Shown here: positions 5,713 to 51,299 of the stretch, one piece after another
How the letters are laid out: every line of letters starts with the position of its first letter
How positions within the stretch are numbered: position 1 is the stretch's first letter
Assembly: GCA_052426225.1 (NCBI GenBank)
Contig: JBNJNM010000008.1
Span: forward strand, 2,046,001-2,110,000
DNA from: Zancudomyces culisetae HAW-14-8
Taxonomy: Eukaryota > Fungi > Kickxellomycota
DNA: 64,000 nucleotides
Direction of reading: 5' to 3'
Program-made: the position numbers and the translations under genes
Notes under the pieces: generated by a model
Told to the model about the DNA's origin: nothing
Database searches by the model: none
The model's input: only the letters and a program-made list of their open reading frames with translations

Positions 5713-7947
5713 CTAGCGTCTGGTTGACGGTCTACTAGTGGAACGACTTTTGGAGCGATGGCTGCGACTACTCCGTTTGCGGTCGCGGTCATGATCTCTC
5801 CGTTCGTGGTCGCGGTATCGATCTCTCTCGTAATCTCTATCTCTTTCCCTATCTCTATTTCTGTCTCTATCCCTACCCCTCTCCCTCTCCCTCTCCCTCT
5901 CCCTGTCTCTGTCCCTCTCCCTGTCTCTATCCCTGTCCCTGTCTCTATCACGACCATGTCTACGGCTTTCATTACGATAACTGCGGTATCTAGAGTGACT
6001 CCCTGAAGACTCAACGCTTGGCGACCGGGATCTATATCTAGATTTCGACCTTGGTATTGACCGAGATCGAGATCGAGACGGAGACTGTGACCTATCTCTA
6101 CGACTGCCATCACGCTTGGAAGACCTCCGGTAAGAAGAAGAAGTGGTAGATCTGGGTGGAGAAGAGGTTCTAGCAGATCTAGATTGTGATGATACTAAGC
6201 CACCGTACTTACTGAGGAGTCTTTCCTGGGCTTCCTTTAGCTTTGCACCGACATCGCCAGCACCATCGGCATTCGAGGCAGACCCTCTGTTGGTTGAAGA
6301 AAGTGATGTAGCTGATACTGATGAGGTGGCATTGAGATAGGAGGTAGGAGGGATGTTTGATGATGGAACTCCTGGTCTCGGCGGTTTATTGATGGCGTTC
6401 TTTGAAAAGTTTATCCTATAGATCATAATAATAATATTATCATTATTGTTAGTTAGTAGGCATTTTAAAAGGTATGAAGGAAAATAAAAAATAACGAATA
6501 AAATAAAACTTACTTTAATGGACGGCCAGCAAACATGCATCCGCTCATTGTGAGACCAATTTGGCAAGCCGCGATTGTTGCAAACTCAACAAAGGCAAAC
6601 CGAGTGGGCTGAGAAGCATCACCGGCCATTTTGACGTATGCGACGGGCCCTGCAGTGCCAAAAAAGTCCATCAGCTGCTGTTCTGTGATGTGACTAGCAA
6701 TGTTTCCTATGTAGATGGTGCGGGCAATTTCGTTAGCTTTAAACGGGTCGTGCTCAAGAATTGTGGGATGAATGATGGCTGCCATCTGTGGAGGGATCGG
6801 CTCTAACTCGCGCGGTTTCGCTGCCATCATGGCTATAACCGATGGATTGCCGAGTGGCGCCGTGTACGAAGATATTCCGGCCAGACCCATGAGCGCAGAG
6901 GTGGCACTTGCAGGGTATGCGCTGCCAATACCAGAAGCACCACCTTCGGTATTAGCAAATGAAGAGGCTAAAGCCGGGGGAAGAGTCTGGCCCTGGGGAT
7001 TTGCATAGTACGCAGCAGAGCCATATCCGACAGGTGCTATTTGAGTTGGTTGAACTATGGGTCCTGTGTATAGATAAGAAGATGCGGCACCAGCTTGGGT
7101 ATGCAAAATTTTTGAGAGTTTGAATACTTTATCACCCAGTGGCGAGTTGTTTAAAAAGATGGCCAAGTCTGCATCGTTTTCATCCGAAAAAGAAATCACA
7201 CCTTCTTTGGTACCTGGGTTAGTCGCACTAAATAATATAGGTATAGGTATATATATATATATATGTTATTTGTTTGATAATATGTATAATAATAGTGACA
7301 AATGGTTAAAACTGTATACACAAAGAGATAAAAATTGGTAAATATGGTAAAAACATTCGCCTATAGTTGTTGATTTGTACACTGTAAAATTTAAATTTGA
7401 ATTAATGCAAAAGCTTGGTTTGAAAGTATAGTAAAGGTGAGTGTTGATTTGTATAATTTGAGATTGTTAATGTTTTTATAATCAGTATGGTATGAGGAAA
7501 AGAAAGAAATATATACAATCACATCCTAACACAAAATACAAGAATACAGTAGAGATACATACACACAAGCATAAATAGAGCAATTGGTACAAGTTTTCGA
7601 ATATGAAATATTTGAAAAAGTTGAAGTGTAAAGTGTAAAGTGTAAATGAATAATTTTAGGGAAAAAGTGAGTGGAGTTTAGAGTAGTTTACCTGTTGTTT
7701 ATTTTTATGTCGCAAACGGTTCCAACATGGTTAAAAACTGTGGTTAATAAATCTTCGTCGACTGCAGTGGACAGGTTAGTAATCTATAAAATTTTGTAGG
7801 TAGAGGATGGATTAGGGAGGAGGAGGGGAGATTAGAAAGGATTAGGGTGAGGGGGAATTGAGGATAAATGTGGAATGAAAAGAGATAAAAAAGGGGGGGG
7901 GAGAGAGGGGTGTAACTTGCCTTGAGAAACGATTTTTTTTTACTCAT
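5713..7947 (-). CDS. SRSF11/SREK1-like SR splicing factor (2 RRMs + RS/RD/RE tail), 4 exons
   Basis: Exons 7947-7921, 7783-7692, 7227-6514 and 6415-5713 splice in frame. RRM1 reads MSKKKSFLK|ITNLSTAVDEDLLTTVFNHVG; RRM2 reads RTIYIGNI...RFAFVEF...GRPLK|INFSKNAINKP; an RS/RD repeat tail follows. Intron 1 is GC-AG. Confidence 0.85.
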
Positions 7948-12877: not shown

Positions 12878-13798
12878 ATGGCAAACCAAATCCAAACAGA
12901 TGATTTTGCAGAAATCCGAACACAACTGTACATTGGCGCTTACCAAGCAGTCATCAACAATCTTTCCTCGACTAACAATCAGTACAAGCGAATCAACCAA
13001 GACGAGACCAAATTGCTGCTGAGCCGTGCATATCTCGCTCTAGGTAGGTACAATCTAGCACTATCAGAACTCGACAATTCCGGCGGCAAGGCAACCCTCG
13101 AAGCTGCCAAAATCTTTGTAAAATATCACCAAGCAAAGGCCGCCAAAAACAACGCTGAAATGGACAAGCTGGCTGATGAGGCCTCTGCTCTTTTAGAGAC
13201 CGAATCGAACATTACCGATCCATCCTTTGTTGTTATTCTCAGTCTTATTTACCTAAACCAAGAACGATACGAGGATTCAATGAAACTTTTAGCCTTACAT
13301 CCTCAGAATATTGAGTGCATTGCCATAATGACACAAGCATACCTCATGATCAACAGAGTCGATATGGCAGAACAATTACTAGCACGTTCAAAGAAACAAT
13401 TTGAAGAGTCGCCCATCTACCAGCTTGCTGAAGCCTGGGTTTGCCTGTTTGTAGGCGGAAAGAAGAACGACAGAGCATTCTATACATTCGACGAGCTCGG
13501 CCAGCTCATCTCCTCCCCCTCTGTAAAACTAATGAACTGCCAAGCCATTTCAAAATTGCACCTCAATCAGTATCCCGAGGCTGAGGGTATTTTGTTGGAG
13601 GCTATGGACAAGGAAAGCTCTAATGCCGACACCCTCGTAAATATGAATATCTGCTCGATTTTGATGGAAAAGGATGCCGAGACTATAAGCAGGCTAAAAA
13701 GTCAACTTGAAGACCAACATCCAAATATCGCTTTTGTTGCTGATATCAACAAAAAGGCCGCACTTTTCGATGAGCTTGCAAATAAATTTGCTGCATAA
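12878..13798 (+). CDS. SEC28: Coatomer epsilon subunit (epsilon-COP), TPR-like
   Basis: 306 aa with LYIGAYQAVIN, RAYLALG, QLAEAWVCL..GG..AFYTFDEL and C-terminal K.ALFDELA, all typical of COPE. Confidence 0.9.
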   Translation: MANQIQTDDFAEIRTQLYIGAYQAVINNLSSTNNQYKRINQDETKLLLSRAYLALGRYNLALSELDNSGGKATLEAAKIFVKYHQAKAAKNNAEMDKLADEASALLETESNITDPSFVVILSLIYLNQERYEDSMKLLALHPQNIECIAIMTQAYLMINRVDMAEQLLARSKKQFEESPIYQLAEAWVCLFVGGKKNDRAFYTFDELGQLISSPSVKLMNCQAISKLHLNQYPEAEGILLEAMDKESSNADTLVNMNICSILMEKDAETISRLKSQLEDQHPNIAFVADINKKAALFDELANKFAA

Positions 13799-15106: not shown

Positions 15107-16822
15107 TTAGTGACTTTGATTCCATTTTACACAATCGTCAAACCTAACCAGTTTTCCACCAAAGATGTCCAGTGCGCTAAACAACCATAACATTTGAAAA
15201 TTTTAAATTTTGTACAATGAGTCAAACACAAATTAAAGCACAATAAATACACTGTATCTACTATATATCACAACGAGATTAATACACACCTTCCAATTGT
15301 TATATCCACCTTTCCGTTAGAAAGTCTGTGAACTTTATCCAGATCCAGTATGCCTATTTTTTTTAATCAAGAATGATATGTAAACCAAGCGTAAGGTATG
15401 CCGAATATACCATATAAAATACACACTTACTTGACGCGCCTCCTGCATATGTCGTTGGAATCGACACCCATTCACCCAACACTAAAATTTTACACTTCAC
15501 ATTAACTTGGTTTTCTAAAACTAAAAGTTTGTTAAAACACACGATTTAGTTACACACTCACATTTAACTAGCTCTTCATCAATTCCATTGCATAGCCCCT
15601 CAACATCTGCCGCATGCACTAGAAACTCGCTATTTAGTTTTTTTTTTCCCCCCCCTTCCCAAAGTTAGCAATAGACTAGCAAAATACTTTCGGTATAAAA
15701 ATATTATTTTATGATAAAAATATATTATTTCTTACCAACAGTGTTCAGACAACATTTCAAGTGTTTCTATATATTTGTGTTTAAACGATAAAGTGTTTAT
15801 CTTTACCTACCACCTCTGGCTCTTTCATTCAAGACATAGAAAAATAAATGTTCTAGTGAAATATTACCTTTGTTGACCCAAAGATCAGTGTTGTCTTGCC
15901 ACTTGTTCATTGCCACAACCCATCCCGATGCTGACTTTCGACAACTAAATAATTAAGAGGTGTAGTTTTTATTAATTTCTAGATCCCGAAACATATTCTA
16001 CATCGATTTGTGTAGCCATTATTGGTGAATAAGTTGAAAAGAACGTGATAATACCTTATATCAACCACAAGATTGTCTTTTCCTATCTTTTCGCTCAGCT
16101 CCACTAGCCGCTCCATTGAGAATTTTTTTTCGGGAAATAACCAACTCGTCACGATAACCTGTATGTTGAGAATAAACAGAGACAAAATTACAAATTAGAC
16201 ACCTGAAATATATTTATTAAACGTAAAGTTGAAATAAACAGGAAACAGTTATAATTAGCACCACTTTCCTTATCTGCACCCGAATCGAGCCAAAACTGAG
16301 CGTTTTCGATTGTAATTCCTCCTCCTACTTGCAAACCCCCTATTTAAACTCAACCAGGTTACTTTATACTCTTTAATTTACACATTTAGTAATTCATTTC
16401 AACTTTTTTTTTGCCAACTTTTATGCAAGAGGATGTAAACTGAAAATTAGATTAAAAAAAAACATACCTGGCCACGCTTGTAAAGCTTCTTTGGCAGCCT
16501 CATCATTGTTTGGCCCAAGCTTGATTAAATGTCCACCTCTTAAATCGTGTTGTTGATAAAGTTTTGCAAAATAGCTTGATGTTTTGCTATTGTTTTACAG
16601 TCAAAATTTTTATGTTTTTAAATCTCACTTATAGATTTGTAAAAGAAGCTATTATTTTCATACTAATACAGCTGGGATATATAAATTAGAATTAGCAACT
16701 TACTCTGATACAAAATTTGTTCTCAAATCGCTCTCGTTTTCTTTTAGCGTTCCACCAACTATCTGCTTCACTTTTCCATCGTGAAGATCAATGCATGGTC
16801 TAAACTTTGTTGATTTACTCAT
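15107..16822 (-). CDS. HIS6: ProFAR isomerase (histidine biosynthesis), 10 exons
   Basis: Exons 16822-16704, 16586-16468, 16339-16269, 16158-16055, 15944-15868, 15766-15735, 15629-15562, 15481-15431, 15353-15290 and 15176-15107. Translation gives [66 protein letters not shown] and [13 protein letters not shown]. Mostly missed by the ORF track. Confidence 0.95.
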
Positions 16823-18179: not shown

Positions 18180-19293
18180 ATGGGTATTGACACAACGAAT
18201 AAAGGACCTGTAAGGGTTAAATATGGGTTCAGGTCAAGTATATTATACACCGAACCAAACAGATTCAAATATCTTGCGGATGATACAGGTAACGTGTATG
18301 CTAAACGTGAATTTCCGACTTTGGATAGCAAGTAAAATAGTATATCAAGCTACCAAAAGGGTATAAACAACATTTTTCTCATATTCATATAGATAATCGG
18401 GATAATGAAGATAGTTTCGATACAAGCGAGTCAGAAAGCGAAACGGACGAGGAACCATATAAAATATTCGGATATGGTGAGCCAAAAGCAGGAAGTACTC
18501 GCTATCTACAAACCCATATGTTTAATGCACGCAAATTGGGGCTAGACCAAGTCAGAACATTTTTTGATGATATTTTCACCTCAGAGATTGGTAACTTATT
18601 TCCACAATTTTACTTTCTATGATGGTTCATTATCCACTATATATACCTAGAGTTTGTTCTTATTATCACGTTCTAATCGTATCGATTGTAATATTAAACT
18701 AGATCATGAAATTAATCAAAACAGGGAAATGTCAAGGCTAACATGGAAGATTTCGGCGTATTATACGCTAAAAAACAAAAAAATACCAACAAAAGTTGAA
18801 CACCCCCCAATGGATCCGTTTTTTGAGGATGAGCTAGAGTATAAGGTGAAAAAATCCAAAAATGCCATACAGGTAGGCAAAAATATACAGGCTCCTAACT
18901 TGAGACCCAGAACATCAATCAGCAGGTTGGCAACGGAGCCTTTACACTCAGAAATCACCAAGAAGGAGCATGACCACTGGGACTTTAAACATCGCTTTTT
19001 TAAGGGTATCAAACATCCAAAATCTACTCGTCCTACTCCAGCAAAAACAAACATTGGATATAGAAATAGTAAAGAAAATAGTATGACAACTGGTGCTGAA
19101 AGAGAAAAGAGTAATTTATTGAGTGTTTTTAGCTTTAAGGCAAGTAGCGCGGTAAGAAATGTTGATAATTTCGATACTGTTAATAGTGAAAACGGCAGTT
19201 TTAATAAAAGTAAAAGTGCCGTTCCTGGAGAATGGGGGGTCGAGAATATGGAAAATAAAAAAGAAACAAAAGGAATCGAAAATCAAGATGAAG

Positions 19294-19332
<39 letters not shown>

Positions 19333-19895
19333 ATGGTGACACTGGTACTTCATTAGCTGCGCCACAAGATAAAAGAAACTCTATAAATATAGAGGATGAT
19401 ACAGAGAAACATGAAAGTAAAATGTTGAGAATGTTTAGCTTTAAAAACAAAGGTAAAAATAAGAAAAACGACACCAAGAAAGGGAAAACGAAGAAAAGCA
19501 AAACGATTAAAGGCAAAAATGCTAAGTTAAAGGAAAAGGGGGCTAAGAGATTCGGAAAATTTGGTAAAAAAAAGGAAAAAAACGAAACAGTAGAGACTGA
19601 AGATGCTGAGGAGGTTCAAGAAACCGAAGCCGATGATACTGCCAATAGAGAGAATTCTCAGGAACAACAGAGAGGCAGCCAACAACCAGATAGTAACGAG
19701 AATGTGGCCGAAAGTAGAGAAAGTACAGAGGAGAGAGGAGAGTCGAGTAATATTTTTTCCAAACTCAAATTAAGAAGGTTTTCATTGAGGCATACCGAAA
19801 GTAGCAAGAAAACAAACGATCAAGATGACATACCAGCGGAGAAGAAAGAATCTCTAAAAAGAAGGGCAACTCTAAAGTTTTTTGGGAAAAAGTAG
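18180..19895 (+). CDS. Hypothetical K/E-rich, largely disordered protein, probably 3 exons
   Basis: ATG at 18180. GT-AG introns at about 18289-18392 and 18591-18702 join in frame to the 18654-19895 ORF. An (EG)n tract is encoded by (GAGGGT)n. No family recognised. Confidence 0.55.
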
Positions 19896-50076: not shown

Positions 50077-51299
50077 CTACCAATCGTGATAAAACCTTGC
50101 CGCATACTTCAAGAATTGTGATTTTGCAGTGCCAGGATCTCCAACCAGCAAAAAGTGCATTCCACAATGAATATTGAGTCCATCGGTACTCTGTTTACCC
50201 GTACCCCCAATCATGACCAAAAGCAACGCCAGCTTGACAATATACAATCCATATACCTGGGGGCATATCGCAGCCAAAATTCCATCCCTCCCTCTAATAG
50301 GTTTGTCCACATACTTGCTCCAATACATTTCAAAAAACAGTTTCATTTCTCGTGAAACAGAGTAGTTGTTTAAATGATCGTTATTGTTGTGTACAAAGAT
50401 ACTGCTTGCCAACATACATATACTTATATCAGGCCGCTGCCCAGGTATTACTGCCTTCCACCTTCTTAGCACTATTCCTACTATGGTTAATTGATCCCCT
50501 GACCTAGCTTTATCAACAAGATCATTTTGCAAAATTACAGCTATATTTCGAGGAATAGAGCCAAACACTTTTCTATCTGCCATCTCCTGTACCTTAATTT
50601 CTTGATAGTCAATACACGTATTGATGTTTCCATACTCTATTTATTTATTTTTCATAGAAGCGCACCTAGCAGTTACAGTTACAAGTCTTGAGATTGGAAT
50701 GAATATCTTGCTATTAAATACATTAAACATTAGAACTTGCCAGAATCGTTGGTAACTTCAACCAAATTCCCATTACCACAGTCCATACATTTCATTGGTT
50801 TGGCTATATAATTGTACGACTCGATATCTGCCTCACTTTGCGTATACCGTTTACATTTGGTGCATTTGTAGAATCTAAAGGTTTCAAGAATTTTGTTTGC
50901 AACCATCCTAATAACAATACCATTAAAACTCAATAATTTCCCAATATCAACACTCGTGGGTACTTCGAATTTATCCAACCCGTCAACTTTTGGTAACTTT
51001 TCTATTCTTACAAGCACATTTTCTTTTACCTTCCCCTCCCTCAGTCCATCGATTTCTTTATAAAGCTCTTCCTGCAACCCCAACAACACTGACTCAATTT
51101 TTTTGATGTTCACCATTGGTTTTTTTAGTATTTTGTAGCCCATTATGGGTGAGAATTCAATCAGCAAGTGTATATCAATAAATACACTATATGAAGTTTG
51201 TGTGAAATCATTCAAAATTATTTTGGTGAGATCATCGATATGCAATTCTCGTAGGTATGTTGTTATTTCTTTCTCGCTTAGATCGTTTCTGTCTCCCAT
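50077..51299 (-). pseudogene. MCM9: MCM9-like helicase, truncated just after Walker A
   Basis: Exon 51299-50741, GC-AG intron 50740-50637, then a second exon. Motifs: DIGKLLSFNGIVIR, CTKC...CMDC zinc finger, CIDYQEIKVQE, GSIPR, DLVD, ICPQVYGLYIVKLA, LLVGDPGTAKSQFLKYA, then a stop. No Walker B or Arg finger found downstream. Confidence 0.75.

Follow-up and report, generated by a model that had tools for sequence, protein, structure and literature searches.

GA-AG introns are a rare but described class, known from fungi, flies, plants, copepods and tunicates, and intron 3 of HIS6 in Zancudomyces culisetae is probably a further case. GA donors need an exonic AG and nearly always have A at +3, and in Eurytemora affinis GA and GG donors make up ~10–12% of the introns in sampled genes (PMC5714493, PMC7072748). 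The introns of E. affinis and Oikopleura dioica resemble that of HIS6 in having GA after an exonic AG, +3 A and an AG acceptor, and in being missed by automated annotation. However, they look recently gained, whereas the HIS6 intron occupies a position also found in other fungi, and the ~10–12% in E. affinis contrasts with two known GA-AG introns in Z. culisetae, where none of 26 other sites examined was a clear donor. Lower frequencies are reported for Ganoderma lingzhi, with 35 GA-AG introns (0.038%; PMC11590231), and Drosophila melanogaster, with 12, all with junction support (PMC4528330). Both share with Z. culisetae a low GA-AG background and an ordinary spliceosome and differ from it in lineage, the HIS6 intron belonging to Harpellales, Zoopagomycota. 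Intron 12 of SYMRK in Trema orientalis has a functional GA donor that is ~95% spliced according to RNA-seq (PMC10668435). Like that of HIS6, it is a single, frame-required GA donor with a derived +2 in a conserved gene of natural isolates; in contrast, the Trema GA came from GC, while distant orthologues of HIS6 have GT and the splicing of HIS6 is deduced from sequence. GC-AG introns with full-consensus donors (core AGgcaa; PMC12805630) likewise tolerate a non-T base at +2 given an exonic AG and consensus at +3 to +6, and differ from the HIS6 intron in having C instead of A at +2. In human donor usage, GA ranks below GC, TT and AT (PMC6280755). A yeast reporter with a U2A 5′ splice site shows a strong splicing defect with accumulation of lariat intermediate (PMC10578475); the change from U to A at +2 is the same, but the yeast donor is a laboratory mutant, whereas that of HIS6 is a natural allele under selection. 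No report of GA-AG introns in Harpellales was found in the literature searched, which does not by itself prove their absence.

Zancudomyces culisetae is a mosquito-gut fungus (Harpellales, Zoopagomycota). Within the window, the whole stretch of 64,000 nucleotides that was analysed, HIS6 lies on the minus strand, and its third intron starts with GA and ends with AG in genomic DNA, which is the definition of a GA-AG intron. Our main reading, to which we give a probability of roughly 85%, is that this is a genuine GA-AG intron in a single HIS6 gene, that the ordinary major (U2-type) spliceosome removes it, and that it derives from an old GT intron altered at +2. The gene and its parts are as follows, in window coordinates.

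15107–16822, minus strand: HIS6 (ProFAR isomerase, eukaryote-type HisA), ATG to stop, 10 exons, 257 amino acids (gene model, homology)
16704–16822, minus strand: exon 1, which holds the CIDLH motif (gene model, yeast His6 match)
16468–16586, minus strand: exon 2 (gene model, homologue match)
16269–16339, minus strand: exon 3, last residues GADK, ending in exonic AAG (gene model, PF00977)
16159–16268, minus strand: intron 3, 110 nt, phase 0, GA-AG, GC 27% (gene model, profile, ab initio prediction, other isolate)
16055–16158, minus strand: exon 4, which begins VIVTSW, a barrel strand (gene model, profile, predicted homologue structure)
15945–16054, minus strand: intron 4, GT-AG in the window (isolate comparison)
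15868–15944, minus strand: exon 5 (gene model, homologue match)
15736–15766, minus strand: exon 6 (gene model)
15562–15629, minus strand: exon 7 (gene model, homologue match)
15431–15481, minus strand: exon 8 (gene model)
15290–15353, minus strand: exon 9 (gene model)
15107–15176, minus strand: exon 10 and stop codon (gene model)

Full-length homology and conserved motifs indicate that the gene encodes His6, the eukaryote-type HisA. Searched singly, exon 1 matches yeast His6 (PDB 2AGK) at E = 8e-9; the hits of exons 1 and 3 to PF00977 are weak and under the family cut-off. The protein is up to 61% identical to bacterial homologues and keeps 71 of the 73 columns conserved at >95% in a profile of 208 bacterial His6-type proteins. 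The frame is open over 257 codons, and eight of the nine introns are GT-AG, intron 3 alone being GA-AG, so the original prediction that the other eight introns and the exons are intact holds. The published HAW-14-8 assembly is a PacBio HiFi assembly of 27.2 Mb in 26 contigs (PMC12611240), and the genome that we scanned comprises 27.09 Mb in 25 contigs. In this genome the HIS6 locus was the sole match to a full-length homologue, and the same search found no second HIS6 copy. HIS4-like and HIS7-like genes with long open frames are also present. Fungal names were absent among the 120 matches listed for a full-length bacterial His6 query. The neighbours of HIS6 are an intronless coatomer epsilon gene (window 12878–13798, plus strand), 99% identical to a Z. 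culisetae protein, and a low-complexity open frame of 413 codons (window 18654–19895, plus strand) whose Gly-Glu repeat is shorter in a second isolate, COL-18-3.

The boundaries of intron 3 appear to be fixed by homology, and all canonical junctions do worse. On the minus strand the donor reads GAT AAG|GAAAGT at 16269|16268 and the acceptor ATACAG|GTT ATC GTG ACG AGT TGG at 16159|16158, a junction that bears the signature of the GA-AG class in its exonic AG before the donor and its A at +3. Two sites on the donor side are central to what follows.

16263–16271, minus strand: 5′ splice site of intron 3, AAG|GAAAGT; the +2 A is window 16267, T on the plus strand (sequence, donor scoring)
16197–16205, minus strand: in-phase cryptic GT donor CAG|GTGTCT, giving a 44-nt intron and 22 additional amino acids (gene model, donor scoring)

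Between exons 3 and 4, all frame-keeping GT, GC and GA donors were paired with all AG acceptors, and each pair was scored against the profile of 208 homologues. The GA junction scored 399 bits, two GC options 392 and 387, and the 44-nt GT intron 379. The span from G to S in the surrounding motif has exactly nine residues in 208 of 208 homologues, so that none of them has an insertion or deletion here, and the GA junction alone retains this length. In the predicted structure of a homologue, the junction would fall at a short turn entering a barrel strand (helix 90–95, strand 100–103). An ab initio gene model built without homology also chooses the GA junction once GA is permitted. The sequence and the best profile score thus bear out the original prediction that exon 3 ends in GADK and continues into VIVTSW across a 110-nt intron starting with GAAAGT, and retention of the intron does meet TAA, as can be read in the sequence. 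The claim that CAG|GTGTCT is the sole in-phase GT alternative did not stand, as a GT donor at 16328 also keeps the frame with the same acceptor (−20 amino acids), as do GC donors at 16259 (+3 amino acids) and 16277 (−3 amino acids); all three score below the GA junction.

Use of the canonical donor CAG|GTGTCT at 16202, with a 44-nt intron removed and a loop of 22 residues inserted, is in our view very improbable. This donor is in phase and stop-free, its U1 duplex of −6.7 kcal/mol is average, it reads CAG|GTATCT in COL-18-3, where it is nearer the consensus, and the 66 bases that it would add are identical between the isolates. However, a stretch of 66 nt should show only ~1 difference, which makes their identity hardly informative, and their non-coding score is −6.9, compared to +6.9 for exon 3, with a GC content of 26%. 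The 22 added residues, correctly counted in the original prediction, would lie at a point where 0 of 208 homologues have an insertion. A 44-nt intron would also be shorter than the introns of HIS6 (77–128 nt) and than the shortest predicted intron (61 nt, with a filter from 55); its sole CTRAY motif lies at +5 to +9, overlapping the donor, and the G at +5 is absent. Removal of the 110 nt in two steps through the internal AG|GT at 16203/16202 was also considered and rejected, since it would still need the GA donor.

The nearby GC donors would keep the frame at a cost of 7–13 bits, and GC donors occur elsewhere in the genome. Nonetheless, use of 16259 or 16277 is a remote prospect: both sites have GGT|GC contexts, donor scores in the 0–2nd percentile and U1 duplexes of −3.8 and −4.3, and they would alter a loop length fixed in 208 homologues, while the three GC donors predicted in this genome all read G|GCAAGT.

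The A at +2 is present in a second isolate. In COL-18-3, known from an older Illumina assembly, the region lies on two contigs, LSSK01000890.1 and LSSK01001499.1, which show 15 differences between them over 15,901 sites and are each ~1.5% diverged from the window. The donor AAG|GAAAGT is present in both. The original prediction had offered a base-call error as one reading of the A; it is rejected because an independent Illumina assembly, made from a different isolate, has this A on both contigs. Apart from the prior rarity of GA donors, nothing speaks for a sequencing or assembly error, and with the genome of the window also consistent with the published PacBio HiFi assembly, such an error is scarcely credible. 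About 16 kb of the region is present twice in the COL-18-3 assembly (L165, L166), as two haplotypes, a recent duplication or a redundant assembly. The two contigs also differ at the donor of intron 4, which has GG for GT in LSSK01000890.1 only, AAG|GGATTAT (L003:3220, minus strand, equivalent to window 16053), and GT in LSSK01001499.1. None of the canonical junctions tried for intron 4 in LSSK01000890.1 restores the conserved motif, and a further two changes private to this contig lie no more than 30 nt from the GG donor. The GG is, from these comparisons, apparently a minority allele or a GGT-to-GGG assembly error and not a fixed trait; general use of GG donors was rejected, as GG occurs in one contig only.

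Selection on HIS6 bears on whether the donor works at all. The coding sequences of the two isolates differ by three synonymous and no replacement codon changes, and their introns at 16 of 942 bases (19 compared to the other contig). At the intron rate ~10 replacements would be expected where none was found (Poisson P ~3e-5, from three synonymous changes in two isolates). Because both isolates have the GA donor, it is older than their split, and selection on the protein would have continued with GA in place. The HIS6 protein has thus probably been under purifying selection since the GA donor arose, which would indicate that the protein is made and not which junction makes it. A splice-defective donor, the second reading offered by the original prediction, would make HIS6 a poorly working or failing allele, in a gut symbiont supplied with histidine by its host. 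Several observations are in keeping with it: U is nearly invariant at +2, in yeast U2A stops splicing at its second step (PMC10578475), ~20% of BUSCO genes are missing from the fungus (PMC12611240), and one COL-18-3 contig has a second damaged-looking donor, the GG of intron 4. However, that GG is missing from the second contig, HIS6 has no stop or frameshift and retains its conserved columns, and the other histidine pathway genes have long open frames. Together with the lack of replacements while GA was in place, these points make a splice-dead allele unlikely, and we regard a decaying HIS6 as improbable. The remaining reading of the original prediction, a true GA-AG intron, is favored by the junction scores, the two isolates and the signature of selection.

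The intron itself appears to be old. A pattern scan of metagenomes for the HIS6 intron, in which any base was accepted at +2, recovered six fungal-type HIS6 loci in which the same codon is followed by an intron, each time with the donor GTGAGT; in four of the six, the acceptor followed by VIITS (AG|VIITS) is visible. Other fungi thus have an intron at this position, and the A at +2 is most simply read as derived.

A second GA-AG intron was found in a MutL/PMS-like gene of the same genome.

L148:1328-1500 (G000:C15:1033279-1033451), plus strand: GA-AG intron of the MutL homolog, GAG|GAAAGT to GAATAG, 173 nt (exon homology, gene finder)

The flanking exons, searched singly, match yeast Pms1 residues 37–58 and 59–98 without a gap, the upstream exon match being weak alone (E = 1.4). 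The GA donor is identical in COL-18-3. The MutL homolog also has a predicted GC-AG intron, with the donor GAG|GCAAGT (L148:1850) common to both isolates. A tandem second copy of the 5′ portion of the MutL homolog, GA donor included, appears in one COL-18-3 contig (L164:159-1531, 1746-4011), as a real partial duplication or a scaffolding artefact. With 15 non-GT dinucleotides equally weighted, the gene finder picked the MutL GA donor, three GCAAGT donors and five noise-like scattered calls. Two more GC-AG introns with GCAAGT donors are predicted ab initio (window 50637–50740, minus strand; L137:8973-9045, minus strand), and an AAG|GCAAGT motif at window 7920 is a candidate GC donor (window 7784–7920, minus strand).

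The GA donor class is probably rare in Z. culisetae, with a modest excess over other fungi still compatible with the data. Among 26 other AG|GAAAGT sites, none was a clear donor and one was ambiguous, in 264 kb (~1% of the genome) scanned with a low-sensitivity detector. Given 1,101 sites of this type in the genome, donors of this type would number at most roughly 120, and a handful is likely. The genome count of AGGAAAGT is 1101 compared to 919 for the reversed control, and Markov models give 1326–1418 from a sample biased towards the motif; from such 8-mer counts, which do not settle the GA frequency, little can be concluded. AGGCAAGT occurs 712 times genome-wide, compared to 391 for the reversed control (Markov ~610), which fits a sizeable class of GC donors and is no proof of one. 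The GA rate seems compatible with the 0.04% of Ganoderma and far from the 10–12% of Eurytemora, and a Eurytemora-like use of GA and GG in several percent of introns is not indicated by these scans.

Judged from its sequence features, intron 3 resembles a U2-type (major) intron, with complementarity to U1 and U6, a CTRAY motif and a YAG acceptor. One U1 gene with a standard ACTTACCTG arm and one U6 gene with a standard ACAGAGA box were found. The U6 snRNA (L144:1496-1612, G000:C21, minus strand) has an odd 3′ end, where a short additional hairpin, GCCTC-TACG-GAGGC, precedes the T run. The donor GAAAGTGG departs from the RTATCCTT that, together with a TCCTTAAC branch site, marks U12-type introns, and U12-type splicing of intron 3 is rejected. 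U6atac gave no match in the genome in a search run without a positive control. A variant U1 is rejected, as one U1 gene was found and its arm is standard. RNA editing back to GU is rejected as well, because neither A-to-I nor C-to-U editing can yield GU from GA. With +1 and +2 ignored, the HIS6 donor has the best context among all sites scored; leaving +2 aside, the GA donors of HIS6 and the MutL homolog both score above every one of the 62 predicted GT donors, and their duplexes with the U1 arm reach −7.4 and −7.5 kcal/mol, respectively, compared to a median of −6.7 for the 62. Genome-wide, AG|GTAAGT 8-mers number 792, and the full context is found in a minority of GT donors. Its occurrence at both GA sites, though a minority among GT donors, suggests that A at +2 survives only there. 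In GT donors, AG| and GTRAGT seemed to avoid each other, but this pattern was set aside, since a number of plain AG|GTAAGT donors had been missed by the predictor.

16194–16198, minus strand: candidate branch site CTAAT with its putative branch A (16195) 37 nt ahead of the 3′ end (motif position)

This distance lies within the 10–39 nt from the 3′ end where CTRAY is most frequent in predicted introns. We propose that +2 of an old GT intron mutated, directly or via GC, and that the change would have survived because every other donor position is optimal. U1 would pair at −2, −1, +1 and +3 to +6, with a single A-A mismatch in between, loop 1 of U5 would hold the exonic AAG, and the AGT at +4 to +6 would pair with the ACAGAGA box of U6, so that contacts with U1, U5 loop 1 and U6 may compensate for the A at +2. 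Branching would then take place at CTAAT (−37), with CAG as the 3′ site. In yeast U2A, the first step proceeds and exon ligation is limited (PMC10578475), and thus the second step would be the likely bottleneck. Splicing may be somewhat less efficient, with some lariat intermediate or retained intron, yet would suffice for a working enzyme. The direct observations behind this proposal are the sequence, its occurrence in both isolates, the selective constraint on the protein, an intron position common to other fungi, and the normal U1 arm and U6 box; from this DNA evidence, we infer splicing at the GA donor.

A broader explanation is that recognition of +2 is relaxed in this fungus to admit GT, GC, GA and occasionally GG, which would make it a lower-frequency fungal parallel to Eurytemora, possibly tied to changes in Prp8. 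Leads in this direction are two GA introns with one hexamer, the GCAAGT donors and the GG variant of HIS6 intron 4. Prp8 (L167:1687-1692, G000:C22) reads WEQSSG, compared to WEKASG in human and other aligned chains; it keeps the equivalents of yeast W1575, E1576 and Q1594, with QS for KA at the yeast-equivalent positions 1577–1578. Sites next to 1577–1578 are known to relax splice-site choice (PMC12707134), and the QS substitution may be regarded as a lead only. The alignment of Prp8 to known chains breaks off after the SSC motif. We consider such relaxed recognition doubtful and favor an old GT intron altered at +2 and removed by the ordinary major spliceosome.

The GA intron has consequences for annotation. 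HIS6 was uncalled on one COL-18-3 contig in the older annotation and on the other was called only as a 67-aa fragment beginning downstream of the GA intron (window 16116–15803), while the MutL homolog was a one-exon hypothetical protein consisting of the last exon, without the ATPase exons. Gene finders miss GA-AG introns. The letter at +2 of HIS6 intron 3 is real, and our results suggest that the gene is probably functional and that the intron is of a rare but known kind. It would represent a natural change from U to A at +2, apparently working in an enzyme gene present once in the genome, at an intron site that carries GT in other fungi, and a ready substrate for how the spliceosome passes an A at +2 that stalls exon ligation in yeast. 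Z. culisetae ought not to be scored as HIS6-negative, and some genes tallied as absent or broken in Harpellales may have escaped notice because of non-GT donors.
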